DNA from: Macrostomum lignano
Lineage: Eukaryota
Direction: 5' to 3'
NCBI GenBank assembly: GCA_002269645.1
Contig: NIVC01004532.1
Coordinates: 1 to 42,958 of the forward strand
Length of the DNA stretch: 42,958 nucleotides
Shown here: piece by piece, positions 11,276 through 37,300 of the stretch
Position numbering within the stretch: position 1 is the stretch's first letter
How the letters are laid out: each line of letters opens with the position of its first letter
The notes under the pieces: model-generated
What the model saw: only the letters and a program-made list of their open reading frames with translations
What the model was told of the DNA's origin: nothing
Databases searched by the model: none
Translations under genes and position numbers: made by a program

Positions 11276-13034
11276 TCAGCCTTCTTTCGCAAACATCTCA
11301 TTGTACTTTTGCACCATTCTCTTGACGCTGGTCAGAACAGGCATTGGTCCGGGCACGCAGTCGCGTATGATCTCGTCCAGATCAGTTGCGCTATCCGTAG
11401 CTGCGCCACTCGACCCAACAGACTCGTAGTCGAGGGCCTCGTCAAGCTCGGATTTCGCGTCGCTCTCGACCTGAGAGTTGACCACGTTTGCGGGCAGGAA
11501 GCTGAAACTGTGAGTGGCACTCGAATGATAGGTCAGATACGAATAGCCGTCCCTGGTGCCAACCAGCATGTCGTCTTGGCTGCTACTGCTGTCGCTGTAC
11601 AGGAAGAACCTGCTGGATTTGGCACCCCACGAGTTGGCGTGATTCTGCGATCGCGACCGTTGATGGGCGGCGGACCGTTTCGACGGCTGTTTATTGCGCT
11701 TTCGGCAGCAGCCGCCGCCGCCGCCACCGCCGCCGCCCCGCTTCTGCTGCCGCCTCGATATAAATTCGTTATAATCCTGCCGCGGAGCGCTGGCCAGCGG
11801 AGTGGCGCCTTCGCTGTCAGCGGTCGGCGTGGAAAATGATTGAGTGTGCGTGAGCGTCACCGGCTGGCCTTGCGTGACCGCGCTATCTTGCGGCGACGCC
11901 GCTCCCTCCGGCATATTGTCGGACACATCGGATCTCTCAATTGTCAGTGTCTCTTTTTCGCTGAACGCTGTCGCACCGTACTCCTGTGACGGTTGCATAG
12001 CAACCGGCGAGTACTGGCTTTCTGGCTTCATTTCTGAAGAGCCCACTGCCTCTTCGCCCGGCGAGTCCAGTTCCTGCATCTGCGATGGTCCGAATCGTTC
12101 GTCGGTGCCGCTTCCCGTTGACTGTTGCTGCACAGAGGCGACTTTGCCCGGCGAGTCCAGTTCCTGCGTCTGCGAAGGACCGAATCGTTCGTCGGTGCCG
12201 CTTCCCTTTGAGTGCTGCTGCACAGAGGCGACTTTGCCCGGGGTTGCTGACTCCTCGTCCGCTTGCACTCGGCCGGATCGACTTGGCCCGATGGGGAACA
12301 GCGCCTCCCGACCCAGCGAGGCCCGGCGCGGCTTGGCGGCTGTCGCCCTCGACATTGGTGACGCCACGATCCGCTTGGGACCGCCGGAGTCTTCGCTGTT
12401 CGCCTGCTGGCCAGTGGGGGTCGGCGGAAGCTCGCTGCTGTACACCTGCGCCAGGCCCTCCAAATGGTCGGAGGCCTCCTTGAGCAGGCCGACGATGTTG
12501 CCACCGCGGCCGCCGACGTTGTGACCAGCCGATTGCGAAGAGCCGCTGTCTTCAAACCCGCCACCGGCCTCGGAACCATTGGCGGCGCTCGTCTCGTAGC
12601 TGCGCAGGAAGCAGCTGCCGGCTTCGACCAGCTTCCTGACTGCGGTCGATTGGCCGCGGAAAAGGGATGCCACGGCCGAGTGATTGCTGACCAGCGTCAC
12701 CGACAGGGGCAGCCCGGCGATGCCGCTGTCCGGTACGGCTAGCGGCGGCAGCTCGGACAGGCCGGTCTTGAAGCTGGACGGCGCCCAGTCAACGAACTGA
12801 ACTCGGCCGCGCTCGCGCAGCGACAGCAGCGCCTGCTCGATGTCGGCTGTCTTGGCCGCGCCTCGGTAGATGAGCGCCCCGGCCATGTGCTTGCCCTGGC
12901 GCAGGTCCACATCCGCTAGCTGACCATCGGGCTCCATCAAAGCCGAAGTGATGCCGATGGCGCTCGAGCGCTCCTTGCCGACTGCCGAGGCTGCAGTAAA
13001 CGGCGCGCAGGCCACGATGGGGTGCTTCAGCTGC
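11276..13034 (-). CDS. Tubulin-like gene, last exon (C-terminal half of the fold plus ~380-aa tail)
   Basis: Acceptor CCCGCAG|G at 13035; QLKHPIVACAPF aligns to alpha-tubulin RIHFPLATYAPV; open to the stop at 11276. Confidence 0.9.
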
Positions 13035-15701
13035 CTGCGGGTTGGTTGGGAAGCCTCGGAATACCATTTGATCCTGAAACTGATGACTGTCCTGACATTC
13101 CTGACCATCCTGACCATCCTGACCATCCTGACCATCCTGAACATCCTGACCATCCTGAACATCCTGACCATCCTGACCATCCTGACCATCCTGACCATCC
13201 TGACCATCCTGACCATCCTGACCATCCTGACCATCCTGACCATCTTGACTATCCTGACCATCCTGACCATCCTGACCATCTTGACTATCCTGACCATCCT
13301 GACCATCCTGACCATCCTGACCATCCTGAACATCCTGACCATCCTGACCATCCTGACCATCCTGACCATCCTGACCATCCTGACCATCCTGACCATCCTG
13401 ACCATCCTGACCATCCTGACCATCCTGACCATCCTGACCATCTTGACTATCCTGACCATCCTGACCATCCTGACCATCCTGACCATCCTGACCATCCTGA
13501 CCATCCTGACCATCCTGACCATCCTGAACATCCTGACCATCCTGACCATCCTGACCATCCTGACCATCCTGACCATCCTGACCATCCTGACCATCCTGAC
13601 CATCCTGACCATCCTGACCATCCTGACCATCCTGAACATCCTGACCATCCTGACCATCCTGACCATCCTGACCATCCTGACCATCCTGACCATCCTGACC
13701 ATCCTGACTATCCTGACCATCCTGACCATCCTGACCATCTTGACTATCCTGACCATCCTGACCATCCTGACCATCCTGACCATCCTGACCATCCTGACCA
13801 TCCTGACCATCTTGACTATCCTGACCATCCTGACCATCCTGAACATCCTGACCATCCTGAACATCCTGAACATCCTGAACATCCTGACCATCCTGACCAT
13901 CCTGACCGTCCTAACCATCCTGACTATCCTGACCATCTTGACTATCCTGACCATCCTGACCATCCTGACCATCCTGACCGTCCTGACCATCCTGACTATC
14001 CTGACCAATTCTGACCATCCCATTCTGACCAATTCTGACCATCCTGACCATCCTGACCATCCTGACCATCCTGACCATCCTGACCATCCTGACCATCCTG
14101 ACCATCCTGACCATCCTGACTATCCTGACTGTCCTGACCATCCTGACCATCCTGACCATCCTGACCATCCTGACCGTCCTGACCATCCTGACCATCCTGA
14201 CCATCCTGACCATCCTGACCGTCCTGACCATCCTGACCATCCCATCCTGACCATCCTGACCATTGACTGACCATAACCATCCTGACCATCCTGACCATCC
14301 TCCTGACCATCCCATCCTGACCATCTTGACAGTCCTGACCATATTGACCATCCTGACCATCCTGACCATCCTGACCATCCTGACCATCCTGACCATCCTG
14401 ACCCATATTGACCATTCTGACCATCCTGAAAAGCCATCCTGAATTCCCTATTTGTCAAGTGACTGTCGCAGTACTTACTTAAACGGCAGTACATTGCTGC
14501 AAATGTTGGCAATGTTGCACATCATGGTGCCTGGAAATCTCTCCATCACGGTCAGGTTGCTGAAGCACATGGCGAGCATGCGATTCAGATGGGCAAAGGT
14601 GGCGCCACCGTACAGGCTGAGGCCGGACCTGCACAAATTGAACATGGCCGAGTTGGTGACGGAGAAGGACAACGAAGTGTAGTCCTTAGACTCGTATGAG
14701 TATAGCATCGAGTTGACAAGTTCGCAGGTGCTCTGCAGGCCGCTGTTGCCCGAGCTGACGCTCAGCTCAAGTACCTGCAGACGGGAATCGAACTCGGACC
14801 TTAGCTCCTCCAGGTAGGACACCGACAGGCCGCTGCCAGTGCCGCCGCCGGTGCTGTGAACAAGAAATGCGGTCGGCGTCACATCCGACTTCTCAGAGAG
14901 CCAGCGAAACCTTTCAACTGCTTCCGGCAGGAGGTTGCGGCGGAAGTCGCGCCGGCCGCGCATGTAGTTGAACCCAGAGTCCGCGCTGTCGCTGAGCAGC
15001 TGCCGGGTGCTGAACAACTCCCTGTAGGGCCCGACTCGAATCTCGTCTGCGGAAAAACAGGTCAGACTAATCAAGACATCAAAATCCGTTACTCAAATTC
15101 TGATTGGCTGTTTTTTAACTGGTCTGTCTGCCCTGTTGACACCCACCTCACTCCGCAAGCTACCCTCCGATTCTGATTGGCTGCCTTTTAACTGGTCTGT
15201 CTGCCCTGTTGACACCCACCTCACTCCGCAAGCTACCCCTCCGATTCTGATTGGCTGCCTTTTAACTGGTCTGTCTGCCCTGTTGACACCCACCTCACTC
15301 CGCAAACTACTTCTTCGATTCGGATTGGCCGCTTCCAAATTAGAGTTTCAACGATGAAGGAGAGACAGAAGCAGCTAACCTATAAAGCGTATGCTTACCA
15401 ATACACGTTGGATCCGTATCTAAAAAGATCGACCTGGGCATGAAATGGCCGTTCTGATTGCGTAGAAACATTGCGTCATAGAAACCGTTGCTAGGGCAGT
15501 CGGGCTTGGCTAGGCCGCTTTTTTGAACATTGTGCTCAAGACAGAGCAGCTCCCAAATCGCGTTGCCGATCTGTACTCCAGCCTGACCCACGTGGAGAGT
15601 CAGGAATGGCCGGGCCTGGGCGAACAGAACAAAACGAGTATACGAGCTATATGGTTTGTCTTATCTTAATTGACTGATTTTGCCTGAACTACCCTAAGCA
15701 T
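11276..15701 (-). CDS. Divergent alpha-tubulin-like protein with long C-terminal extension, ~850 aa; exons 15701-15693 (tentative), 15615-15399, 15046-14479, 13034-11276
   Basis: HVGQAGVQIGNAIWELLCLEH, PRSIFLDTDP, GGGTGSG signature (14829-14849), GKHMAGALIYRG, alpha-type QFVDWAP. GT-AG junctions join in frame (217+568+1759 nt). The start exon is uncertain. Confidence 0.9.
12058..12241 (-). repeat. Coding 90-bp (30-aa) tandem duplication in the tubulin tail
   Basis: PGKVASVQQ(H/Q)S(K/T)GSGTDERFGPSQ(T/M)QELDS occurs twice. Confidence 0.9.
13091..14430. repeat. 9-bp microsatellite (TCCTGACCA)n filling tubulin intron 3
   Basis: About 145 tandem units; source of the MVR/ILT/DHP/GQD/WSG pseudo-ORFs. 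Confidence 0.97.
14479..15046 (-). CDS. Tubulin-like gene, exon 3
   Basis: Acceptor TTTTTCCGCAG, donor AA|GTAAGT; DEIRVGPYRELF...HSTGGGTGSG...SNVLPFK. Confidence 0.92.
15098..15325. repeat. ~73-bp minisatellite, ~3 copies, in tubulin intron 2
   Basis: TTCTGATTGGCTG...recurs at 15098, 15171 and 15245. Confidence 0.9.
15399..15615 (-). CDS. Tubulin-like gene, exon 2
   Basis: Acceptor GCCCAG, donor G|GTAAGC; ARPFLTLHVGQAGVQIGNAIWELLCLEH...DPTCI. Confidence 0.88.
15693..15701 (-). CDS. Tentative start micro-exon (Met-Leu-Arg) of the tubulin-like gene
   Basis: ATG CTT AGG|GTAGTT gives a 77-nt phase-0 intron. Alpha-tubulin genes often have a tiny first coding exon. Not unique. Confidence 0.4.
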
Positions 15702-17747: not shown

Positions 17748-17830
17748 TTAATAGCCAGTGAGCTCGGCGAAGGTCTGGTCCAGCTCCTCGCTGATGCCTT
17801 TGTAGCGGTCCTTCTCCGAAAGCAGCTCGT
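17748..17830 (-). CDS. TPM: Tropomyosin terminal exon 9B ([27 protein letters not shown])
   Basis: 83 nt, acceptor CCGCAG, canonical invertebrate muscle C-terminus. Confidence 0.95.
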
Positions 17831-20800
17831 CTGCGGATTTGTCAACGAATTGAAATCCCATGCTGCTACTGTCAGTGCACTTACGAGTGCACTTACTGTG
17901 TACTTTTGTGACCACAATGTACTTTTCTAACCCACTGAATATAGATTTGTCCATACAGCACTGTACATTTTCAAAGCAATGTACATGCCTAGCCAAAATA
18001 GATATGTGAATTTCTAATGACTGTACATAATGTTACAGCAGTATACTTCTGCATTTGTGACACTCCTTGTAACTTTACATTGAAACGAACCGGATTTGCC
18101 AGCCCAGGGAAAGCCAAAAAACTGTGTAAAAACATGCAGGCCACGCTGTCAAAGGCGGCATGCAGAACAAAGCAAAGTCACTGAACGGCAGGGAGACAAA
18201 CACAAACATTTTCAGCATGCCAAACTCCTTTCACTGTTGAAAAACAAGCAGATTGCAGATTGACAATATTTTTAATATTTGAAATTGTTTATTTATTATA
18301 AACAGTTAGTAACGCGGAAAGGTTATAAGTAGTAATAATAATAATAATAATATTAATACGCAGGAATACAAACAGAGCGTGCAGCTGGCCGTTCTTGATT
18401 TTCCTAAAATTAAAATATTTCCTAACCGCTACTGACAGTAGCGAAAAGCGATAGAAACTGCGAAATTGTTTATAACTATAATAATAACTATAGCATAGGC
18501 TAATAACTAAAACTTATAACAAAAAGCTGGCTGATGAAGCTTAGCGGATCTGGAGGGGGTGGGGCAAACTTCCGAACTGAACATTTCGTTCAGCACTACT
18601 CAGAGACCGGCGACAGTAGTAAGATGAATACGTTGCTATTTTTATATTCATTCATTCATGTAAAAATTTATCAGTGCAGTTTTTTAGACTAGCAAGCAAA
18701 AAGCCTAGTTGCAAGAGAAAAAGCGCTCACTTGATCTATCTGGCATTAAATAGATGGCTAAGGTAATTAAATTGGATAGTATTGGTAGCACGGGCTAACA
18801 GCATAAACACCAGGCAGTTTTAGTAGACAAAAAAGGCAGAAGGCAGAAGCTAGCTATGCAATCAGAAATTTTATTAATAAACAATTCCAAACACGCTACT
18901 GCCAAAGCTATTATTACCTTAGGTAGTAGCAAAACAAGCGCGTATTGATTATGGGTTCGATTAATGAAAAAAACTTACTGCCTCGGAGAGACCGTAAAGA
19001 AACAATCCGTAACTAAGGTAAACACTCTCTGTTGCTAAGCGCCGTATCAGCGAAGCTCGAGCAGACCAAAAGTTCAAACTCGGTTGCAACAGGCCGTGCA
19101 ACAACAGCAAACTAACGAAAACCCGTGCAATGTTAATAAATATATAAATAAACTTGGGTGCCCAAGCAGCTGGGTCCACGGTTTCAGTGTTCTGTAACAG
19201 TAAACTCATTCTATTGCTACGGAGCTCTCTGGGTCTCCCATTCTCTTTTAGATCTTCTGGAACTCGCCAAGCATGCTGTCCATCTCCTGCTTGAGGCTGG
19301 CGTTGCGCTGCTTCTCCTCCAGGAGGCGCTCTGCGGAGCGAATGGGGGAAACGTTGACGCCACTCGGTCTGTGTCCCCTTCTCCTGTCTGTGTCCCCTTC
19401 TCCTGTCTGTCTCCCTTCTCCTGTCTGTGTCCCCCTTCTCCTGTCTGTGCCTCCTTCTCCTGTCTGTCTCCCTTCTCCTGTCTGTGTCCCCTTCTCCTGT
19501 CTGTGCCTCCTTCTCCCCCTGTCTCCCTTCTCCTCTGTGTCCCCCTTCTCCCCTCTGTGACCCCCTTCTCCCCTATGTGCCCCCCTTCTACACTGTGCCT
19601 TCTTCTACAACTGAATCTCAAATCTCTCCCTTGCATCTCACTTGTACTCCATCATCCCTACTGCAAACACAAACTGAGAATCAATAAGCAGTTGCTCACC
19701 CTCAGCCTTGTCGAGCTCCTTCTGGTGCTTAACAGACTCGCGCTCCGCTTTCTCAGCTCGGTCCTCAGCCTTACAAAAAGCGAGAACTTATTCATAAAAT
19801 TCACATGCGCTATTGCTAAACTCTGTTAATAGCCGGCATGCTTTGTTCTGGTCACGTCAAACTGAACTGAAAACCACACGGCAGACAAGACACGGACAGG
19901 CAAACAGATTTGGGGCTGACAAAATCAGAGCAATAGAACATCCGCGGCAAAAGGTCCGGTTCGTTTCTCGGCCGATGCTCATAGCGGAGAGGCCGCACCG
20001 CAGTGAGCAATGACAGATACTGTAACATACCCTCCAGCCTGTCCACTTCGCTTTGCAGCTTGGACACCTGCCTCTCGGCCTCCTGAGCGCGCTGCTCAGC
20101 CTGAGCTCACGATCGGGGGTGACGATTGTGTCCGGATTTAGTCAGAGAATTCAATGTACTTACTGTCTGCTCGAATTGCGTGTATTTTGCCTTAGCAACA
20201 TCCCAAAGTGCATACTTGTTAAATTATTCGTGTCCTAAGATAATATAGCTGTCTATGGGTGACTCTCAATCTGCCTATGGGTGATTCTCAATAGCTGTCT
20301 ATGGGTGATTCTCAATCTGCCTATAGGTGATTCTCAATAGCTGTCTATGGGTGATTCTCAATAGCTGTCTATGGGTGATTCTCAATCTGCCTATAGGTGA
20401 TTCTCAATAGCTGTCTATGGGTGATTCTCAATAGCTGTCTATGGGTGATTCTCAATAGCTGTCTATGAGTGATTCTCAATAGCTGTCTATGGGTGATTCT
20501 CAATAGCTGTCTATGGGTGATTCTCAATAGCTGTCTATGGGTGATTCTCAATCTGCCTATAGGTGATTCTCAATAGCTGTCTATGGGTGATTCTCAATAG
20601 CTGTCTATGGGTGATTCTCAATAGCTGTCTATGGGTGATTCTCAATAGCTGTCTATGAGTGATTCTCAATAGCTGTCTATGAGTGATTCTCAATAGCTGT
20701 CTATGGGTGATTCTCAATAGCTGTCTATGGGTGATTCTCAATAGCTGTCTATGGGTGATTCTCAATAGCTGTCTATGGGTGATTCTCAATAGCTGTCTAT

Positions 20801-23800
20801 GGGTGATTCTCAATAGCTGTCTATGGGTGATTCTCAATAGCTGTCTATGGGTGATTCTCAATAGCTGTCTATGGGTGATTCTCAATAGCTGTCTATGGGT
20901 GATTCTCAATAGCTGTCTATGGGTGATTCTCAATAGCTGTCTATGGGTGATTCTCAATAGCTGTCTATGGGTGATTCTCAATAGCTGTCTATGGGTGATT
21001 CTCAATCTGCCTATAGGTGATTCTCAATAGCTGTCTATGGGTGATTCTCAATAGCTGTCTATGGGTGATTCTCAATCTGTCTATGGGTGATTCTCAATCT
21101 GTCTATGGGTGATTCTCAATAGCTGTCTATGGGCGATTCTCAATCTACCTATAGGTGATTCTCAATAGCTGTCTATGGGCGATTCTCAATCTACCTATAG
21201 GTGATTCTCAATAGCTGTCTATGGGTGACTCTCAATCTGCCTATGGGTGACTCAATCTGCCTATGGGTGACTTTCAATCTGCCCATACATGCGCAACCTT
21301 GGGAATCACCCGGCCGTTTCTATTGGCAACACACACATGTAAGTCGCTATTGGCTGAGAGCAGTCACGTGACTACTATTCTGTCCAATAGCGACATACGT
21401 GTGTGTTGCCAATAGAAACGGCCGAGTGAATCCAAAGGTTGCGCCCAAGCATGAATCTGCCTATGGGTGATTCTCAATCTGCCTATGGGTGATTCTGATT
21501 TTGTCTGAGCGTAATTCTTAAGCTTTCTATGGATAATTCTTGATCTATCTATGGGTGATTCTAGATCTGTCAATGGGCAATTCTTGATCCATCTATGGGT
21601 GACTGTTTGCGATGCAGTTTGGGAGCTGCTGGACAGAATGCACGCAATTTAACAGCCTACCTAAAGTCATATTTATCTCTGTATTTAAAAAAAACCAGGT
21701 AAAGCTTTAAATTGGAATAGAACTACTCTTCTTAGTAGAGTGAATTGAATAACACTATCATTTTTAGAAGCAAATATAAAAGAGGCGATCCAGCGAAACT
21801 CCCATTGAAAAACCAAATTCGATTTGGCCGCTACTCCACCGTTGCTTCCTCAACTTCAGCCAGTCGTGTCGTCACATGTTATTAGGTTAAAAAAATTGTT
21901 GGGCAAGCAGGAGCAACAGGAGCAACAGTCACAGCAAGCATACTCGTGCACTAATCTGGACTCAGAACAAAGCATGCGGCCCAGTTAAAACAAGTATTTC
22001 ACGGAGATATAAATTAATATTTACCTCGGCAAGCCGGCGGGTCAGGCTCTTAATCTGAGTCTCGTACGACTCCTCTCTGGATGCAGACTGCAAAGATGGG
22101 CAGGCAGTTAGTTGAACTAATGGGCGACTGTTCGCGATCAAGGGCATGCAGACTAAGATAGAAATGATGCGGCAAGAGGGATGGGGTAGAGACTAGAGAG
22201 AATGGAGAATAGGAGATGGAGCTGGTTTGAAGATTGGTTGGTAGGGATGGAGTCAGTCACCAGAATGTCTGAACAGCAAACTGGCATGCACAAGAGATTA
22301 CAATATTTAAAAGATGTTAACAATTACAAAAAATCATAATGAAAATCATAAAGTTTGTAAATATAAAGTAATGAAAAACGCCATGCTTCAAACTACTCTT
22401 ACTCAATACCCCTCCCCCCCCTAAGTGAACGCATAAAACGCAGGCATAGTTCAAACTGAACTGAACTTTGGTCTTCAAGTTTCAAAGAAGCAATGCTTGG
22501 ATTTTTGCAAATTATACAAGAGGGCACGGCACTCGGTGTGTTAATTACAGTAATATGCGATGCAAGTCGACGAAGAACGACACGACGAGGCTTTGGAGAC
22601 TGTTTCTTCTAAAATACTGGTTTTGCTTACGACTGCTTTGGCGGCTATGAAAATATGCGACATAAGTTTCGTATTACTGAGCGAAATCGCCTCCTTGTAG
22701 CATAAACTATAATCTAGAACCTAACCCGTTCGACACCCACCTCAATCCAGAGCCACTCTAGCTAAACCACTCACTCTAGCCTGCCAATATAAAAAATTCA
22801 GCCAGCCAGCTAAACTTTCCTACCCCTCCGACACCCACCCCATTCTAGCTTAGTCAACCGAGATAAAAGCAGGAGCCCTCTAAACTTTTCTACCCCCCCC
22901 TGACACCCACCCCATTCTAGCTAGTCAATCTAGATAAGAGCCAGAGCCCGCTAAACTTTCCTACCCCTCCGACACCCACCCCGTTCTAGCTAGTCAATCT
23001 AGATAAGAGCCAGAGCCCGCTAAACTTTCCTACCCCTCCGACACCCACCCCGTTCTAGCTAGTCAATCTAGATAAGAGCCAGAGCCCGCTAAACTTTCCT
23101 ACCCCTCCAACACCCACCCCGTTCTAGCTAGTCAATCTAGATAAGAGCCAGAGCCCGCTAAACTTTTCTACGTACTCACACCTGCCCCTCCAGCACATTT
23201 TACAGTCTAGACACACCGTTAATTTCCTCCAATATTAATTTAAAATGCTTTGAACTAATTGACTTATCTTTTTATTGTAGTTCAACTATGGCATACTGCA
23301 ATCTAATTGCAAATCCAATTCAATCTAAGCCCTTACAGCCTTGAGACGCTCGGAGAGATCTCGGATAGTTTCCTCGTAAGACTCCTCGCGCTGGGCCGCC
23401 TCCTGCTCGGAGATCTCCAACGATTTCATGTTGCTGCCAACAACGCGCAGCTCCTCTTCCAGTTCCAGGATTTTGCTGCATTTTCAGTGCACAGTTTCTT
23501 TATCGTTGATTTCAATTGCAACTTTATAGTAATTGTTCATACAAATAGACAGATTAATTTATTCGCTTGAACCATGCCATGCGCAAGCGTGCAAACACAG
23601 ACTTTTCCTATTGTACAATAATTAGCTACTTGTGAGTAGTGAATACTGACTAAACCTCCATAAATTCTTTATGGCGTTAAAAACATAAAATTATAAAATA
23701 ATCGAATCGTTAACGTGAATAATGAATATGATGGGCGCTTAAAAATAACCAAAAAGGTAAACTAAGAACCTTGGCATCCCTCTGCTCAAGCGATTTTAGA

Positions 23801-25165
23801 CTGTTAGCGACAGAGTGCAGCTCGTCCGACAGATCCTTGACTTTGCGCTCAGCGGCCTCGGCCCTCTGTTCCGCCCTGTCCAGCTGGGCTTCGGTCAGAA
23901 GCAGCTTCCGGTTGACCTGATGACGACATGGCCCCCAGGTAGGCGGTTAGTAACAACAAATAAATATATACCCTGCCAGCTATATTTAAAACTATTTATG
24001 TGCCAGTACTGGGAAGTAAAACTCCCATCTAAGCCGGAGTTAGAGGATAACGCTAGAATAAGGATTACACTCCTAATAATTACAATTTTTAAACCAACTC
24101 AAATTCACTGGCACTATAGTTCTTGGCACCCGAACAGCTTCATGCTTCTACTTAGTTCTATCTTCTAGCTCTCTAAAAAACACAGCAATTCCCGACAAGC
24201 AAAAGCAAGACTCTTGTTTAAAAAACGTTAATGCCAAAAAACTCGAAAAGCATTTCGAAAAACTTTAAAAAACGTTTCTGACTTCATACTGGGATTTTAG
24301 TTGTCAGATTGGGATTTTAGCCGCCAGGTTGGGATTTTAGCTGTCAGATTGGGATTTTAGCTGTCAGATTGGGATTTTAGCTGTCAGATTGGGATTTTAG
24401 CCGCCAGGTTGGGATTTTAGCTGTCAGATTGGGATTTTAGCTGTCAGATTGGGATTTTAGCTGTCAGATTGGGATTTTAGCCGCCAGGTTGGGATTTTAG
24501 CTGTCAGATTGGGATTTTAGCTGTCAGATTGGGATTTTAGCCGCCACGTTTGGATTTTAGCTGTCAGATTGGGATTTTAGCTGACAGGTTGGGATTTTAG
24601 CTGACAGGTTGGGATAATTGTTGTCACATTAGGATTTCAGCCGCCAGGTTGGGATTTTAACTTTCAAATCGGGATCACAAGTGTCAGTTTAGGATTTATA
24701 TTCGCACTGGGATCATAACAGTTTAAATCTGCAGTTCATAAATAGAAATCGAGCATGAAAATACAAGCAAGACGGGCAATTAGTAAATAGTTATTATAAA
24801 TTCTCTAATTTGTTTTTGAGAACTCAAAATATCCTGGAACAGGTCTCTGGACAAAAACATTCACAACAGGACGAAGATTTAAATGCAGTCATAAAAAAAA
24901 ACTGAAAACACTTCAATGGGACACGCAGGGCATGCCAAGGGCACCTTTCAGCCGCCTCCAGGCGGGACTCGGCCCGCTCGAGGTCCACCTCGGTGATGGC
25001 CAGCTTCCTGGCTGCCTCATCATATTTGCGGTCCGCGTCCTCTGCGATGAACTTCGCCTCCTTGAGCTGCTCCTCCAGTGTGTTGACGCGCTCCTCGTCA
25101 GCGATGGAGCGGGTCTCCAGCACCTTGCGGCCTCTGCGGCAGCGACAGCGGTTCCGTCAGTGTGT

Positions 25166-25224
<59 letters not shown>

Positions 25225-25251
25225 TTGTGTCTGTCTGTCTGTCTGTCTTTG

Positions 25252-25296
<45 letters not shown>

Positions 25297-25326
25297 GCCT
25301 GTCTGTCTGTCTGTCTGTCTGTCTGC

Positions 25327-25358
<32 letters not shown>

Positions 25359-25383
25359 TTGTCTGCCTATCTGTCTGTCTGCC

Positions 25384-25420
<37 letters not shown>

Positions 25421-28400
25421 TTGTGTCTGTCTGCCTATCTGTCTGTCTGTCTGTCTTTGTGTCTGTCGACTCTGTCTGTCTGTCTGTCTGCCTATCTGTC
25501 TGTCTGTCTGCCTATCTGTCTTAGTGTCTGTCTGTCTTAGTGTCTGTTTGTCAGTCTGTCTTGTTTATTGCTATCAATCTATTTATCTATCAAGCATGTT
25601 TAACTAAACATACTGAATATTCGATAGCATACGAGTATATCGGATATAAAAGCGAATGAATGTTTAAAGGAAAAAATGGTCAATAGTAGCACCGGACAAA
25701 CGCGAATGACCCAAATAATTTAGCAAGTTGATAAACGTTCCAAAAAATGAACAAGTTTACAGAAATTTGGTTATCAGAATGACTTCATCTACAAAATAAA
25801 AACAACATGAAGTTAAGCGTTTTACCAACAACACTGATGAATTGCTGTGTTTCCTGCTGGCAAAAACAACTCCCACAGACTAGGCCCACAAAATCCGGAG
25901 CCTAAATAAAAAGCATCTTACGGATACCATCAAGCCCTCTCTGTACCTCTTCGTATCTTTTCTCAGCTTCTTTGGCCGCATCCGTGGCCTCCTTGACCAT
26001 CTGGTCCAGCGAGCTCAGCCTGGCTTCGTCCTCGTTCTGGCGACTCTCCAGCACTTTGCGGGATCTAATAGAGAGCAGAAATCAATTATTTAAATAAAAG
26101 TACAACGGGAACTTTGAATTCTGTCATCCTCTGAAATCGAAAAGCACGGCACGCGATGGGCATGCGAATATAAAATAGTCATGAAAAGCTAAAAAATACT
26201 ACTTATTCCTGTTCAGTAGTGTAGTAAGGACATAACGACTGGCAAGTATTGATTAACTAATCAGCTCACCGCTCGCTCTCGTCAGCTGCCTTGCTGGCCT
26301 CCTCCAGCTTCTGCGTGGCCTCCTGCAGGCGGCCCTCAGTCTGCTCCAGGTCCTCCTCAATCAGGCGGATGCGCCGGGTCAGGGCCTGCACCTCCGCCTC
26401 GGCCTTGAGACAGGGAAAAATGAGCAAGATTATAAGATGCTAGTTACATTATACCCAGCAAAATTCCATTCAGATTAATAATAAGGGCATTGAATAAAAG
26501 TTCATACTGTATCGGAATAAAATTCAGTAAAAATATCTTATATATCTTATACACATCTTAATCTCTAAGTAAATCTTAGATATTCACAGCTTTGACAAAG
26601 ACAAAAAATCATTGAATTGAAGTCTTGATTTCATAGACTTATAGAAGCAATAAAGCATTCTAGATCAGTTTTTAAATAAGAGAACAAATATGACTAGAGT
26701 GGATTGAAATTTGGAAAGCTAATTTACAACATATGTATGGTAAGACTGCATTTTTTACACAATAGTATTTAAATCAAAATTTGCAGTTGCTTCAATGATT
26801 GGCATGGAAACTGGCTTATTTGTGAGCTTTATAAAATGTGTCAAGTCTTTACAAATGAACTGATCCTACTATGCCAACTCCCTGGCCTAAAGTATATAAA
26901 TATGAAATCACAAATACATTAAATTTAATGGAAATGCATTAATTTTTAGGCAAAATGTTACAATTAAGCTGTTTCAAACATTGCATAGTAAGTGAGGTTT
27001 CCACCATTAACAGTAGGATTTTTCTGCCTATCAAACTACCAATAGGGGGGGGGGGATTCCCCCCTTTTTGACAATTTTTTGCTGCACCAGAATGGAGCAA
27101 CGCAGGCACACAAAATTCAAGAACATAGGCTAAATTTTTGTTGCACACCTTCTCAAACAAGAATCAAGTCGCCAGCCCTCCAGACTGTTGAGATATTCAA
27201 CTATTCTGCCAGAAGGTTGGATTATCCCATAAGCACCAGTGTATTCAGTACACCCCTGTGTGCCAAAGTGCAGCTTTTTTAAGTCTCCAAATTTTATCAG
27301 CACATTGACCACATGTGTCTGCATCAGCTCTGACTTTGTTGGTCACTGGCCTTCACCGAGACAAAGCTTCTAGACCTTCAACAGGTGGCACCAGGTGACT
27401 ATGAACATCCTGATACTAATTTCTCTAGTTTTGCTGATCAAACCTTGACAGTGGGTAAGCCTCAACTACTAGGTATCCTCAGCTGGTCTCTCAAGTAGTT
27501 AGTCTTCACCTGGATGCCGTTGGCACCTTCAACAGATGACACTAGGTGACTATGAACACCCTGATGCAAATTTCTAGAGTTTCACCAATCAAGACTTGAC
27601 AGTGGGCAAGCCTTAATTTCTGGACACTTTCAGCTAGTCTCACGAGCATTTAGCCATCACTTGGACCCCATTGGCGCCTTCAATAGGTGACTATGGACAT
27701 CCTTTTGCAACTATGTCAGGTTTTTCTTATCAAGCTTCAATAATGATAAGATTGAGAAGGTGTGCGACAAAAAGTTAGCCCATGTTCTTGAATTTTGTGT
27801 GCCTATATTGCTCTGTTCCAGTGTAGCAAAAAATTGACAGGTGGGGGGGGGAATTTTCTTCCTAGTTTTACTGTTAAGATATTTAATTCATCTAAAGGCA
27901 GGTGGCAGCTAAGCTGCCTAGCCAAAACTGGACTTGTATTGCCACTTGCCTATCACATTAAGTCAGCTATGGCAAGGAGGCACATTTTCTATTTTAAGCT
28001 GCATTTTCTAGGAACTTAATAAGCACCCCTCATAAAACAACAAAAGTAAACTATTTGCATTTTTGTTTTAAAAAATCACAACTTTTAATTCATAAAAACA
28101 GATTTTTTATGGTATATCATTTTTTTCAAAAAAATGATTATATCTCTTAATATAGGTAGCACTAAAATGAGTTGAATTTTTGGCACCAATTTTTAATCAG
28201 TTTGAATTCAATATATTTATATTGATGTCTAGATATCTATGCAGTAGTGAGCCAGGGGGGATATAAGAATATATCACCCCATCTTGATGAGTTATAAGAA
28301 ACAAAAATGAGGTTTTTTGATAAAAAAATGCAAAATACAGTGGCTTAGACTTAGCAAAATTCCCAAAAATTGGCCCATTTCACTTGTAAATTACTAATAA

Positions 28401-31327
28401 AATGTTTTAAATGATATTTCAGCAAATCCCTACCCTAGTTTTTAAAGGCTAAAATACCTTAGTCAAGACAGATATCTGCTGGCTTTATTTTGATTTCAAC
28501 AAAGTAAAGTTTTTTAGCCTAAAAACATGGTTTTTGTACCTTCTTAAATGTATATTTTAAGCATAAATTGCAAAAAAACTATTGAATCAGTCTAAAACTT
28601 TGTCCCTTAAAGTAACCCCCCTTTTCAAAATCCTAGCTTTGCCACTATATCTGTTATATTTAGAATATTGGTATCCAACCTAGGGCACTTTATTATATAC
28701 TAAGAGTAAGATGCTAGCTAAATAGTGACCAACTCATTGAATAGTACCAGCGAGCTTATTTGACCAGCGTAAGCACTGCCACATTAAAATATTGCTATCT
28801 AATAAATGTAAAATGTCTTGTTATCAGCAATTAGGCATACTTGCTAATTGCTGTTTTAGAATTTAGTTAAATTTTAAAACAAAAAAATTGCAGAATTGGT
28901 ACTAGAAAATTCTGCAGTAAATATTAAATATTTAGAGTACCTGAGTGCGCAGATTCTTTTCGTTTTCTAGCTCAGCACCTTTGGTAGAAAGTTCATCCTG
29001 AACAGAATCCAGATCATTTTTCAGTGCCTGCATTCTCTGCTTCAGTGAAGCTAGAACAGATTCCTTATTGTTTGTCGTCATTGTAACTGATATAGCTAAA
29101 ATAAGCACAAAGCTATATAACTATATAAAGAAAGTTTTAGAAGGATAATTATTTAGGAAAGAACGTTCTTTACTACTTTTTTATTGCTGATTCTTGTTCC
29201 GCAGTTTCTAGGAATATTTTAATGCTTGAAAATTTTTTAGTGCCTTTAAAACAAAAAAACAACCTTTAGTGGCTTTTAAAGCCATTAAGTAGCAGTTAGA
29301 ATGACATGAATCGACCAAGTTATATTATTCGTTTTAAGAATTTTTGAAAGATTTTTTAAATGTGCATACAAGCACCTTTATAAATATTGGTTTGTTAATT
29401 CAAATTTCAAAGCGTAAAACTAAATGGATGGAACTTGCACCCAATATCGCTCATCTGAACTCCGTAGCAGATTTTTATATTTCCGTCCTATTACTTCCCC
29501 GTAAAAAAATTGGACTTCCACCGACGTACCCGACGTCGATGGATGTCTATTAGCAATGGGTACTTCTTTAATACGCCTTACGCGAGATGCCAGGGTACAG
29601 TTACTAGCAATTTCATTATTTTGCATTTTGTTCACTTTTTGCCGTCTTGAATGCATATGTACACCTCAGTAATTTCTGATATAATATTGATGAACGTCTG
29701 GTAAACTACTTAACTCATTTAGAATTGTCGAACTCTGATTCTTGTATTACATTTTCATTCTGGGCCATCCCCCCATAAGCCCTAAAGACACAAATTTTAA
29801 CGTAGGGAAACAATATTTCTTGATGACTAAATTATATGTCCCGATTCGAACGTCTGGTTAAGCCTATAAAAATCCGGATCATTTTGCATGTACATGCATC
29901 AAGGACCTCTGAAGTCACTTCGTTACACAGGACGTAACTCTCCGGAATAGTGGATAATTTTTGATGGGTAAATTCACGATGCTATGCTTAGCGATTTTTT
30001 TCATATGATAGCAACTCCACATGTATATAAGTGAATAATAGAGGATGAATTTGACAGGAAAACATTATTTTTTACTATATAAATGACTTTTCTGGTGTTT
30101 TATAACGTCTATTTATTGCGTTGAATTGAGTTTCTTGAGTGCAAACTGAGTATTACTATACGTTTAGTGTTACGAGGAGTTCCACTCGTTGAGACTAAAA
30201 TTTAAGGTGGGATGGGATTATGGTGGCCCAGTCCCAGTTGTGACAGAATCCCTGAATAGGTAAATATATTCTTCAAAGCAGTCTGTTCTTTAAGTTTTGT
30301 AATCTGCCTAATCAGTGTACGTACGATACTGCATTTTATGCTTCTGTGTATTCATTTTCGTTCGAATTCGTTGTGTTTTGATGTTTTTTTCAAGCAATAT
30401 TATTTTTACTGATCTATGAAATGCAATTGTTTCCGGTTATGTTTACAATGAGTTTATGTTCTTTGTTTTTACATTTTTCAACATTCATTTGTTTCCAATT
30501 GCCTTCCATAAATATACTACTTTTTGTTCCCTTCTTTGTCACAAAAACTGACCTTAAAATCATCTTGTTTCTTACACTGACTCGAAGTCAGAGGTCAAAA
30601 GGTTAGCTAATTGAACTGACTATGAGCATTACTTCTTTACTGGTTAATAAACGTGGTGTGTGTTGCTTTCCACTGCCAAAAAGAAGTCAAGATTTTGCAT
30701 TGAAAGGCATGCAATCTACGGGGTACTGTACTAAAAAGTCAATTCTTTCGTATTCTGAGGGGAATAAATAGAAGACCATGCAGCAATCGAAAGAGCACAG
30801 AAATCTGCCCGATTCATCAATCCGTTCAAGACATGACACAATTGCAAAATTTGGCCTTCAAAAAATTTTCCACGATTTTGGAGTGTTCAGTCCTTCTAAG
30901 TAGTCCTTGACATGCATGAGCTAATTAGTTTTGGTTTTGCCACTGGTAAAAGGCTTTAACATCACAAAAAATGATTATACATATAATGGACTTACATCGC
31001 TGGCTCGCTTCTCTGTTCCCTCCAAATTGGTGTTGGTGGTGGTGAGGGACTCCTGGGCGGTGTCGAGATCCTGCTGCAGCTGCTGGAACTTCTTCTGCAT
31101 CTCGCCCATCTCCTCTTCCTTCTTGGCCATCTCAGCCTCCTTCTCCTTCAGCTTGGTCTCCAGCTGGTCGGCCCTGGAATGATTTTGTAAATAAAATACA
31201 GTTGTTCATCATAGCGTCTTGGTGGAAACGATTCAAAAGCAAAACATAATATTCAAACCACGTACGCGTCAACGGCATTCTCCTTCTCTAGCTTCATCAC
31301 CAGCATCTTCTTCTTGATGGCGTCCAT
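17748..31327 (-). CDS. TPM: Tropomyosin gene: long 284-aa isoform (exons 1a,2,3,4B5B,6B7B,8B,9B) and short 251-aa isoform (1b,3,4A,5A6A,7A,8A,9A)
   Basis: MDAIKKKM start, [44 protein letters not shown] end. Exon sums are 855 nt (284 aa, canonical) and 756 nt. All junctions are GT-AG. Pairing of exon 8/9 variants to paths is inferred from similarity. Confidence 0.96.
19248..19330 (-). CDS. TPM: Tropomyosin alternative terminal exon 9A ([27 protein letters not shown])
   Basis: 83 nt, same phase and length as 9B, acceptor CCGCAG. Confidence 0.88.
19370..19585. repeat. CT-rich ~20-bp minisatellite in a tropomyosin intron
   Basis: CCCCTTCTCCTGTCTGTGT-type units. Confidence 0.85.
19700..19769 (-). 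CDS. TPM: Tropomyosin exon 8A ([23 protein letters not shown])
   Basis: 70 nt, GTAAG|GCT acceptor, G|GTGAGC donor. Confidence 0.88.
20031..20100 (-). CDS. TPM: Tropomyosin exon 8B ([23 protein letters not shown])
   Basis: 70 nt, CTCAG acceptor, G|GTATGT donor. Confidence 0.92.
20240..21270. repeat. 24-bp minisatellite (AGCTGTCTATGGGTGATTCTCAAT) with degenerate tail to ~21600
   Basis: About 40 tandem units; source of the LLRITHRQ pseudo-ORF. Confidence 0.96.
22025..22087 (-). CDS. TPM: Tropomyosin exon 7A ([21 protein letters not shown])
   Basis: 63 nt, phase 0-0, TTTGCAG / GTAAAT. Confidence 0.9.
22760..23170. repeat. ~69-bp minisatellite
   Basis: GCTAAACTTTCCTACCCCTCC...AGAGCCAGAGCCC period ~69, 5-6 copies. 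Confidence 0.9.
23337..23475 (-). CDS. TPM: Tropomyosin fused exon 6B+7B ([47 protein letters not shown])
   Basis: 139 nt = 76+63, phase 2 in and phase 0 out. Confidence 0.94.
23770..23916 (-). CDS. TPM: Tropomyosin fused exon 5A+6A ([49 protein letters not shown])
   Basis: 147 nt = 71+76, phase 0-0. Confidence 0.9.
24290..24680. repeat. 20-bp minisatellite (GGGATTTTAGCTGTCAGATT)
   Basis: Tandem units with a CCGCCAGGTT variant. Confidence 0.93.
24945..25133 (-). CDS. TPM: Tropomyosin fused exon 4B+5B ([17 protein letters not shown]...[12 protein letters not shown])
   Basis: 189 nt = 118+71, phase 2-2, CCGCAG / GTGCCC. Confidence 0.94.
25165..25560. repeat. (GTCT)n microsatellite
   Basis: Tetranucleotide array just upstream of the exon 4B acceptor. 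Confidence 0.97.
25947..26064 (-). CDS. TPM: Tropomyosin exon 4A ([40 protein letters not shown])
   Basis: 118 nt, phase 2 in and phase 0 out, TATTAG / GTACAG. Confidence 0.9.
26270..26403 (-). CDS. TPM: Tropomyosin constitutive exon 3 ([19 protein letters not shown]...SKAADESE)
   Basis: 134 nt (canonical exon 3 size), CTCAAG / GTGAGC. Confidence 0.96.
27007..27877. mobile_element. Degenerate MITE/fold-back element (~870 bp) with internal ~160-bp direct repeats
   Basis: 27007-27156 versus 27752-27877 are imperfect inverted arms (e.g. AGGCACACAAAATTCAAGAACATAGGCTAAATTTTTGTTGCACACC). TTAA at both outer boundaries. Internal GGTGACTATGAACA block is repeated. Confidence 0.6.
28941..29081 (-). 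CDS. TPM: Tropomyosin alternative first exon 1b ([47 protein letters not shown])
   Basis: 141 nt, ATG to CAG|GTACTC, phase 0 into exon 3; position and heptad pattern of the short-isoform exon 1b. Confidence 0.88.
30996..31173 (-). CDS. TPM: Tropomyosin exon 2
   Basis: 178 nt, TTCCAG / GTAAGT; with exon 1a gives exactly 80 codons. Confidence 0.95.
31266..31327 (-). CDS. TPM: Tropomyosin exon 1a ([20 protein letters not shown])
   Basis: Canonical MDAIKKKM, donor GC|GTACGT. Confidence 0.96.
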
Positions 31328-34314: not shown

Positions 34315-37300
34315 CTGCGGGACGCGAGTTGAGAGACGCACAGGTGAGCAATCGCACTGACTACTCTACTAACAGTAAGCAAGTTAGGAAAATTATGAAA
34401 TAATTCCTATAAAGATGTTCGGACACTCTTCAGATATTCTTGTACATCTGTCAGGAAAATAAAAGCTCACCAACATATTACTAAAATCTGTTGTCATTAC
34501 TAAATTAAACCAGAGTGGTTGCAGGTAACACAGTGTAAAATAGAAAAGAAGTGACTCTAGACGACTCGAAAATGACAAGCTGTCACGGTACAGGTCGCCA
34601 CAAAGTCGTCAAAAAGTCGCCAAAGAGTGAATTTGAGACGTTTTATCGTCTGCGACTCTGAACCGGCTCTGGGGCCGTGGAGTCGGACTCCAGCATGGAG
34701 TCGGCGTGCTGGAGTCGCTGCAGAATCGCTGAGTTGCGTCTAAAGCGCATCTGAGTCACTTTATGGATTAGAATCGCATTTCGAATTTAGAACAACTCTG
34801 TTAGCCTACTTAAGTTTTTGTGTGCACCCTGGCGCACTTTAAGCGACATAGGCACACAACCGGCGAGAGGCATTGCTGCCCATTCCGCCGACTCCCCTGA
34901 GCAGGCATACAAGCGCGCGGATACGTACGCAGGCACACACTCACACAGGAGTGTACAGCGGCCCTAACTTTATTTTATCGTTAGGCATGTACACTCACTG
35001 CGCCTTGGGGGGTTGGCTCTCAAGGCCGTTAACGGCACGAGCAGAGCCAAGCCGAGATTCCAATTCAGCCCCAAATTAATGTGACTGCACTTGGAATCGA
35101 GCCTGGGTCGCTGGCACACCAGAGCAGCTGCACTACCGCTGGGCTACGGCCCCCCCGCCTACTTAAGTTAGTAGAAAGCTAAGCACACGACTCTTGGAAC
35201 GACTTTTTTTGCGAATTTTCGACCCATGCCATGCGTTCGTGACCCAACAGTCACCTCTCCATCGCATTGCAGTCGTTTGAGTCGTTAAAAAGTCACAAGA
35301 GTCACTAGAGAGTTTGCAAGGACTATTTTGGCGATTCTTCAACGAGTTTCATTCATCCAAAATGTGTCTAGTCTTTACAAATAGGACCTTAGAAAATGTT
35401 TTTAAGCAACAATTGTTTTACCTGGTATGATACCTACTACTTACAGTAGACTTGATTGGAAACGCGAGCATTGGTGCAAAAATTCTATTCAGCTACTGAT
35501 GTAGCATTTTTACAAAAATTTAGCCACTCACTTGTAGACCGGAGCCGCGATGATGTTCAGGAAGTTGACCTGCAGCTGCGGGATGTCCGCCTTGTCCCTG
35601 TCCATGCCCTCCGCCGGCTGCTTGCCCAGCGATTTCTCTTTGTCACCAAGGCTGAAGAACTCCTGATAGATGAGCTTGGCAACCTGCCTGGTGTTCTTCC
35701 ACACCTTGGTCTGGTCGCTGAGGTCCGAGGCGGTCATGAGCAGGCAGAGCATGAGGTAGCGGTGCTGCTGCTTGGACCAGTCCGGGCCCGACTCAGCCAC
35801 CGCGTCAATTTCAGACTTGATTTTCAAGTGGTGCGCCAGGTCCGTGGCCAGGATGATGTCCCGGATGATGTCCAGCACGGCTGAGTACTCCTGAGGGGAG
35901 GGGTGGCACTCCAGCTGATCACTGCCAACTGAGCAATCTTGAAGCTGGACTTCAGTAAGCCAAGCTGGACTTCAGTAAGTTAAGCTGGACTTCAGTAAGC
36001 CAAGCTGGACTTCAGTAAGGCAAGCTGGACTTCAGTAAGACAAGCTGGACTTCAGTAAGACAAGCTGGACTTCAGTAAGCCAAGCTGAACTTCAGTAAGG
36101 CAAGCTGGACTTCAGTAAGCCAAGCTGAACTTCAGTAAGCCAAGCTGGGCTTCAGTAAGCCAACCTGGACTTCAGTAAGCCAACCTGGACTTCAGTAAGC
36201 CAAGCTGGACTTCAGTAAGCCAAGCTGGACTTCAGTAAGCCAAGCTGGACTTCAGTAAGGCAAGCTGGACTTCAGTAAGCCAAGCTGAACTTCAGTAAGC
36301 CAAGCTGGGCTTCAGTAAGCCAACCTGGACTTCAGTAAGCCAAGCTGGACTTCAGGACACTAAACTGGATTTCAGGACACTAAACTGGATTTCAGGACAC
36401 TAAGCTGGATTTCAGGACACTAAACTGGATTTCAGGACACTAAGCTGGATTTTAGGACACTAAGCTGGATTTCAGGACACTAAGCTGGACTTCAGGACAC
36501 TAAGCTGGATTTCAGGACACTAAGCTGGATTTCAGGACACTAAGCTGGATTTCAGGACACTAAGCTGGACTTCAGGACACTAAGCTGGATTTCAGGACAC
36601 TAAGCTGGATTTCAGGACACTAAGCTGGATTTCAGGACACTAAGCTGGATTTCAGGACACTAAGCTGGATTTCAGGACACTAAGCTGGATTTCAGGACAC
36701 TAAGCTGGACTTCAGGACACTAAGCTGGATTTCAGAACACTAAGCTGGAGTAGTCAAGTAAACAGATAGCAAGAGAATCGCTCACCTTTTCAGACAGATT
36801 CTCGAACACATTGCAGCCCTCCCGGTTGAGGATGCAGACAGTCTGGGAGAAGTGGTGGCGCTCCAGCACCGAGCCCTCGGAGCTGTACAGGCCCGATAGA
36901 GCCGAGCCGCTCGAGTTCTCAAAGGAGTTGTTGGTGCCGCGGTGGTCAATGTCGTGACAGAGCGAGGCCACCAGAAAAGAGAAGTACTCCAGCGGGGTCA
37001 GGCACTTGTCCAGTCGCAGGTTCTTCAGGCACAGGTAGGTGAAGTGTGCCACGGAGAAAGCGTGAGACCAGTTGTGGTAGGGCGGGTCCCTGCGGTGTGC
37101 GGTTCGGGTGCAGGATCACCAGAGACATTGGCAGTCCAAATCCCATGCACCTATGATCCCACAATCAAATCCCGAACCCCACAATCAAATCCCAAATCCC
37201 ACAATCAAATCCCAAATCCCACAATGAAATCCCAAATCCCACAATCAAATCCGAAATCCCACAATGAAATCCCAAATCCCACAATCAAATCCGAAATCCC

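Follow-up and report, generated by a model that had tools for sequence, protein, structure and literature searches.

A 42,958-nucleotide (nt) stretch of Macrostomum lignano DNA (contig NIVC01004532.1; hereafter, the window) carries on its minus strand, between approximately positions 31327 and 17748, a tropomyosin gene in which two complete versions of the same protein segment are interleaved. Exon boundaries were set by reading the three minus-strand frames together with AG and GT splice sites (Table 1), and the match of the exon structure to tropomyosin far exceeds chance. In transcript order, the middle exons are 4A, 4B5B, 5A6A, 6B7B, and 7A, and all five possess an AG acceptor and a GT donor. 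They form path A (4A-5A6A-7A) and path B (4B5B-6B7B), which are homologous copies coding for residues 126 to 234, the middle third of the protein; each path comprises 328 nt and completes a tropomyosin of 284 amino acids (aa). An earlier reading of the sequence (here, the original prediction) had proposed two interleaved versions and placed the five exons where they are found, its outer limits coinciding exactly with the end of exon 7A (22025) and the start of exon 4A (26064). The phases that it assigned to exons 4A, 4B5B, 5A6A, and 6B7B are also correct, as is its distribution of introns, with path A interrupted at 4/5 and 6/7 and path B only at 5/6.

The gene is flatworm-like, as judged by its N-terminal sequence, its exon order, and the intron after codon 20/21, which is flatworm specific and common to this gene and those of Echinococcus, Schistosoma, and Hymenolepis. 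Conceptual splicing yields proteins of 284 aa with exon 1a and 251 aa with exon 1b, canonical long and short tropomyosins having approximately 284 and 250 aa. Homologues of exon 1b occupy the equivalent position in Schistosoma and Hymenolepis, and exon 9y resembles both Hymenolepis 9y and the C terminus of Schistosoma mansoni TpmII.3. Exon 3 was found in a single copy in the window and must therefore be used by both paths; every other coding exon found has an A-type or B-type counterpart. A long N-terminal exon (RPEPEG...LFSDYG), which occurs in tropomyosin models deposited for schistosomes, cestodes, one annelid, one nemertean, and one oyster, was sought in the window and not found.

Table 1. 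Tropomyosin exons in transcript order, followed by repeats and neighboring genes, with positions in the window
Feature	Positions	Strand	Length or copies	Phase in	Phase out	Remarks
Exon 1a	31266..31327	-	62 nt		2	Start codon; long muscle-type N terminus
Exon 1-2	30996..31173	-	178 nt			Remainder of ancestral exon 1 fused with exon 2
Exon 1b	28941..29081	-	141 nt		0	Short-form alternative first coding exon; includes NEKNLRTQ; joined to exon 3
Exon 3	26270..26403	-	134 nt		2	71-78% identity with flatworm exon 3
Exon 4A	25947..26064	-	118 nt	2	0	Path A; residues 126-164
Exon 4B5B	24945..25133	-	189 nt (118+71)	2	2	Path B; residues 126-188
Exon 5A6A	23770..23916	-	147 nt (71+76)	0	0	Path A; residues 165-213
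Exon 6B7B	23337..23475	-	139 nt (76+63)	2	0	Path B; residues 189-234
Exon 7A	22025..22087	-	63 nt	0	0	Path A; residues 214-234
Exon 8x	20031..20100	-	70 nt			Muscle type; 91% identity with Echinococcus 8x
Exon 8y	19700..19769	-	70 nt			Divergent alternative; position that of 8y in Echinococcus and Hymenolepis
Exon 9y	19248..19330	-				Alternative last coding exon with its own stop; AATAAA at 18875
Exon 9x	17748..17830	-				Muscle-type last coding exon; ends in stop
(TCTG)n microsatellite	25166-25561		~99 copies			(CAGA)n in the pre-mRNA
20-mer satellite	24290-24675		19 copies			
69-mer satellite	22804-23171		5 copies			
24-mer satellite	20245-21278		44 copies			
19-mer satellite	19367-19599		12 copies			Just upstream of the 9y acceptor
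Divergent tubulin-family gene	~11276-15074	-				Pfam Tubulin, 44 bits; Tubulin_C, 80 bits
Phosphodiesterase exon	35528-35878	-				PDEase_I, 103 bits

Coding capacity of the two paths

The 109-aa peptide of path A scores 95.6 bits against the Pfam Tropomyosin profile (PF00261; cutoff, 38.6), aligning collinearly with profile positions 85 to 192, and the complete products score 294.6 bits (path B, long form) and 195.3 bits (path A, short form). The gapless alignment of the two paths (109 residues) shows 47% identity; derived from the strings of heptad a/d positions, identity is approximately 71% at these positions and approximately 37% elsewhere. Hydrophobic residues occupy 77% (A) and 81% (B) of the a/d positions, compared with 15% and 19% of the others. 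The GC content of third codon positions (GC3) in path A is 0.71 to 0.74, which is coding-like, whereas the GC content of the introns is 0.32 to 0.44. Path A is judged to be working coding sequence because of its Pfam score, its GC3, and the retention of the coiled-coil core, and it appears to be a functional coiled coil that has diverged on its surface rather than a decaying copy.

Path A is far more divergent than path B, which is 80 to 85% identical to flatworm and annelid muscle tropomyosins. The path A segment gave one weak match in a word-indexed search and nothing above approximately 50% identity in an exhaustive HMMER search, and its best short-form look-alikes (P0212 and P0224) are transcript-like contigs. 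This divergence, with no close database protein, could indicate that path A is a decaying or unexpressed relic and that the gene effectively makes path B only. Such a history is highly improbable, however, given an open frame of 109 codons, canonical splice sites, and exon lengths identical to the ancestral ones, in addition to the Pfam score, the coding-like GC3, and an a/d core conserved while the surface diverges. The precise removal of an intron within path A also fits recombination with a spliced A transcript. Furthermore, the homologous A path is expressed in two schistosomes. An mRNA clone of Schistosoma japonicum (Q86DU9; P0181) has the exon chain 1b-3-4A-5A-6A-7A-8A, and TpmII.3 of S. 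mansoni, a short nonmuscle form in which exons are extensively substituted, was obtained by cDNA cloning and is found in all life stages (PMC4026961). The cloning primers used for TpmII.3 in that study match the 1b and 9y sequences.

By analogy with these genes, the window gene would combine the promoter and exon 1a with path B and exons 8x and 9x in a muscle form, and exon 1b with path A and exons 8y and 9y in a short cytoskeletal form. The path would be selected by trans-acting regulators, with nonsense-mediated decay (NMD) clearing mistakes as a backstop, and the choice of exon 7 (63 nt) would be under splicing regulation alone.

Two other means of enforcing exon choice were considered. Steric hindrance between adjacent alternative exons is ruled out, as no intron in this region is shorter than 205 nt. 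Three inverted repeats (I1, I3, and I4) each bracket one alternative exon: 23231-23269 with 21983-22021 (7A), 24828-24843 with 23459-23474 (5A6A), and 25839-25852 with 24178-24191 (4B5B). Their pairing would loop out the bracketed exon, but the energies are ordinary for a GC-rich transcript (-17 to -24 kcal/mol, against a best value of -43 kcal/mol among pairs of 40-nt windows), and RNA looping-out is unsupported.

Origin of the staggered exon boundaries

Tropomyosin genes of three parasitic relatives, Echinococcus granulosus (L001), Schistosoma margrebowiei (TpmII; L002), and Hymenolepis diminuta (Tpm2; L004), were mapped for comparison. In all three, exon 3 is followed by eight separate exons in the order 4A 4B 5B 5A 6A 6B 7B 7A, with lengths of 118, 118, 71, 71, 76, 76, 63, and 63 nt. 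Splice sites are canonical except for GC donors at Echinococcus 4B and the weaker alternative calls, and the Hymenolepis order 8x 8y 9y 9x is that of the window. The three genes form two paralogue groups, and the exon order that they share is therefore older than that gene duplication. Vertebrate TPM exons 4 to 7 are 118, 71, 76, and 63 nt long.

The length of each fused exon in the window exactly equals the sum of two ancestral lengths (189 = 118 + 71, 147 = 71 + 76, and 139 = 76 + 63). The ancestral introns 4/5 (in 4B5B), 5/6 (in 5A6A), and 6/7 (in 6B7B) are precisely absent, leaving uninterrupted junctions with no indel in 4B5B. The ancestral flatworm gene would have possessed four consecutive mutually exclusive pairs (4A 4B, 5B 5A, 6A 6B, and 7B 7A), an order that would have made physical neighbors of 4B and 5B, of 5A and 6A, and of 6B and 7B. 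The window lineage would then have deleted exactly the introns between these neighbors, with codons neither gained nor lost. This simplest history, in which four exons were each duplicated in tandem, one for one, and the window lineage later lost three introns precisely, is likely.

The original prediction attributed the layout to reciprocal intron loss after an internal duplication. Intron loss did produce the offset boundaries, but duplication of exons 4 to 7 as a single block is contradicted by the exon-intron maps of other flatworms, a comparison that the prediction had itself proposed. Both paths have 328 nt, as a block copy would have, yet a tandem copy would read 4-5-6-7-4'-5'-6'-7' and not be interleaved, whereas the three flatworm genes retain four adjacent pairs of single exons with all introns present.

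Polarity is a further consideration. The comparators being parasitic flatworms and an annelid, the window gene might represent the ancestral state, the separate exons of cestodes and trematodes being due to intron gain. This is scarcely credible, since six gains would have had to recreate 118, 71, 76, and 63 nt exactly, in the A as well as the B copies of two paralogue groups. In addition, the 4/5 intron lies at the equivalent position in the annelid Dimorphilus gyrociliatus (L003, 4001-6816). Vertebrate TPM genes have introns at the same 4/5, 5/6, and 6/7 positions.

The Dimorphilus gene is compact, with exons 5 to 9 fused and exons 3 and 4 tandemly duplicated. These duplicates differ from the flatworm set, and the A set therefore looks flatworm specific rather than general to spiralians. 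A 284-aa tropomyosin of Haliotis cracherodii (JAJLRC010000006.1; L005, 2001-2855; P0020) lacks any intron and is probably a retrocopy. Intron loss is evidently common in the tropomyosin family, as illustrated by the Dimorphilus fusion and the intronless Haliotis copy.

Each intron retained in the 4-7 region of the window gene borders, on one side, exon 3, exon 8, or an exon belonging to the other path, and the three lost introns are the only ones in this region that could be removed without destroying an isoform. The losses could have been fixed by drift, for example, through recombination with isoform cDNAs, and have persisted where no isoform was destroyed. Hard-wiring would then be a by-product with little physiological effect, regulators already coordinating the exons. 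Neutral compaction of this kind is quite plausible, with a chance somewhat short of even. It is favored by the restriction of missing introns to those between same-path neighbors, the sole class that can be lost harmlessly, and by ready intron loss elsewhere in tropomyosin genes. Retention of the same-path intron between 8y and 9y (369 nt) indicates that there was no sweep of every removable intron. There is no direct counterevidence; the absence of all three removable introns from the 4-7 region is suggestive, in a sample of three.

This neutral account and the best explanation diverge on a single point, selection of the outcome. Selection of the same-isoform losses, because they hard-wire long-range exon coordination and allow architecture, reading frame, and NMD to replace part of the regulation linking four decisions, is possible but rather doubtful. 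If true, selected intron loss would represent a general and undescribed route from combinatorial exclusive splicing to two fixed internal paralogues.

Reading frame and coordinated exon choice

The five middle exons yield 32 subsets, all of which were enumerated in both the long/8x/9x and the short/8y/9y contexts. Eight are in frame, compared with a random expectation of approximately 10.7 (one third): the two canonical paths, 4A alone, 6B7B alone, 4A-5A6A, 4A-7A, 6B7B-7A, and 4B5B-6B7B-7A. Among the out-of-frame subsets, 22 of 24 contain a premature stop 65 to 572 nt upstream of the last junction (criterion, more than approximately 50 nt). The five crossovers listed by the original prediction (4A to 4B5B, 4A to 6B7B, 4B5B to 5A6A, 4B5B to 7A, and 5A6A to 6B7B) all shift the frame, and misjoined A/B products of this kind carry premature stops. 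Omitted from it were the in-frame joins 6B7B to 7A (+21 aa), 4A to 7A (-49 aa), 3 to 6B7B (-63 aa), 5A6A to 8 (-21 aa), and 4A to 8. Misjoins that duplicate or omit unit 4, 5, or 6 shift the frame because the ancestral lengths of 118, 71, and 76 nt are not multiples of three. Unit 7, in contrast, has no protection by frame, both 6B7B plus 7A and 5A6A to 8 being in frame.

Where the exons are unfused, as in the other flatworm genes, A and B copies have equal length and phase, and each of the 16 one-of-each combinations therefore stays in frame. Fusion reduces these combinations to two full-length products. The two paths of the window gene have no internal boundary in common, and hybrids with one copy of each segment are consequently impossible. 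The lock is mainly architectural, residing in the staggered boundaries, with frame and NMD at most a backstop that does not cover the exon 7 choice, and it is incomplete. The description of the paths as “frame-locked” is thus overstated: a quarter of the subsets stay in frame, exon 7 is unprotected, and the boundaries mainly provide the lock. The frame relations themselves are inherited and already hold in the unfused genes.

These results also bear on the remaining part of the block duplication proposal, namely, selection of the layout as a means by which frame and NMD enforce coordinated choice. The listed crossovers do cause frameshifts, the resulting stops preceding the last junction by a wide margin, and policing of mutually exclusive exons by frameshift and NMD is established in other genes (PMC5740500). 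However, the frame relations follow from ancestral lengths, in-frame subsets are not depleted, and exon 7 is exposed; together with the evidence from exon order, this renders the proposal as a whole very unlikely.

Several points weigh against four one-for-one duplications followed by three intron losses, and against the resulting lock, as an account of this gene. The A exons of different flatworms show weak orthology in sequence (29 to 37% identity, with long branches), and the case for homology therefore relies chiefly on the conservation of their order, lengths, and phases. It is parsimony, together with the vertebrate TPM lengths, that suggests when and in which direction the introns were lost. 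Path A is presumed to be expressed in the source organism, and a database of 5.8 billion proteins contained none more than 61% identical to either path. Six noncanonical in-frame products are possible, and the in-frame fraction is not below the chance level of approximately one third; there is therefore no sign that the frame relations were selected.

Tropomyosin exon duplication, isoform-specific exon sets, interleaved exclusive sets, policing by NMD, and fusion by intron loss are each known separately. The MATEs, or “internal paralogy,” of tropomyosin genes were reportedly described by Irimia, Maeso, Gunning, Garcia-Fernandez & Roy in 2010 (Mol Biol Evol 27:1504). The concept, which the window gene would fit, involves recurrent tandem exon duplication, with copies assigned to long (muscle) or short (cytoskeletal) transcripts from alternative promoters and most of the coding sequence duplicated inside one gene. 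In the literature searched, it concerns one-for-one exon sets, and fused same-set neighbors with staggered boundaries are not described. Internal paralogy of tropomyosin genes is also summarized in a review (PMC3342872).

The S. mansoni TpmII gene (Smp_031770; pairs F/G, H/I, J/K, L/M, N/O, and P/Q [PMC4026961]) and the Echinococcus and Hymenolepis genes share with the window gene their family and the exon order 1a, 1-2, 1b, 3, 4A-7A, 8x 8y 9y 9x. Like the window gene, TpmII has a single common exon 3 (“exon E”); it encodes a 284-aa muscle isoform and a short nonmuscle isoform, as the window gene is predicted to do. Its paired exons are mutually exclusive and never occur together (Silas et al. 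2014, PMC4026961). The TpmII.3 primers also yielded a second 699-bp isoform, TpmII.16 (PMC4026961), and the unfused S. mansoni gene therefore has isoforms with equal ends and equal length but different sequence. Alternatives in this group are separate and one-for-one, whereas those of the window measure 118 versus 189 nt, 147 versus 139 nt, and 63 nt, with offset boundaries. The equal length and identical phase that characterize a one-for-one cluster of mutually exclusive exons (MXEs) are accordingly found in the three flatworm comparators but not in the window, a distinction that the original prediction had drawn correctly.

Frameshift leading to NMD is among the recognized ways of enforcing mutually exclusive splicing (Hatje et al. 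2017, PMC5740500). In policing of the FGFR2 IIIb/IIIc type, as for units 4, 5, and 6 in the window, inclusion of both copies or neither copy of a unit that is not a multiple of three causes a frameshift and an early stop; the window adds the removal of in-frame A/B hybrids through the loss of common boundaries. Human CUX1 also has multiexon mutually exclusive sets in clusters interleaved along the gene (PMC5740500), but its sets are contiguous blocks (3a+4a versus 3b-e+4b), whereas the window has alternating units with boundaries offset by intron loss. In arthropod Mhc genes, intron loss likewise joins an alternative exon to its neighbor (Odronitz & Kollmar 2008, PMC2257972). Fusion there accompanies loss of the alternative copy, leaving a constitutive exon, while the window gene keeps both alternatives. 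According to the original prediction, the staggered layout is not known to have been described, and no description of two surviving alternative paths offset by same-path intron loss was found in the literature searched.

The coordination of several distant splicing choices within one transcript is an open question, for which tropomyosin is a classic case. The window gene and its cestode and trematode relatives provide a natural before-and-after pair, with eight separate units and 16 in-frame combinations in one state and five fused exons and two full-length products in the other. A comparison of their isoforms would show how far coordination is achieved by regulation alone and whether fusion removed real hybrids. 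The case also clearly illustrates a constraint on alternatively spliced regions, in which introns can be lost only between exons of one isoform.

The layout has consequences for annotation. Tools for MXE detection that are keyed on equal length and phase will miss staggered exons, and gene predictors may chain A and B exons into chimeras. Models P0008, P0045, P0123, and P0124 (from Echinococcus, Schistosoma bovis, and Hymenolepis) link A with B exons or continue through introns, producing chimeras of 371 to 437 aa. These flatworm models are annotation artifacts caused by the exon layout.

Repeats and neighboring genes

Each long intron between alternative exons contains a satellite array (Table 1). 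The (TCTG)n microsatellite extends to within 33 nt of the downstream 4B5B acceptor, into the interval expected to hold the branch point and pyrimidine tract, and presents many decoy CAG sites; it could affect the use of 4B5B or be neutral. Rfam gave no matches in the window. Two other coding features lie on the minus strand. The divergent tubulin-family gene is interrupted by, or reads through, a large hexamer-type satellite at approximately 13.0 to 14.4 kb, which has long MVRMVR and PDHPDH open frames. On the other side of the tropomyosin gene, an exon encodes part of the catalytic domain of a 3',5'-cyclic nucleotide phosphodiesterase.

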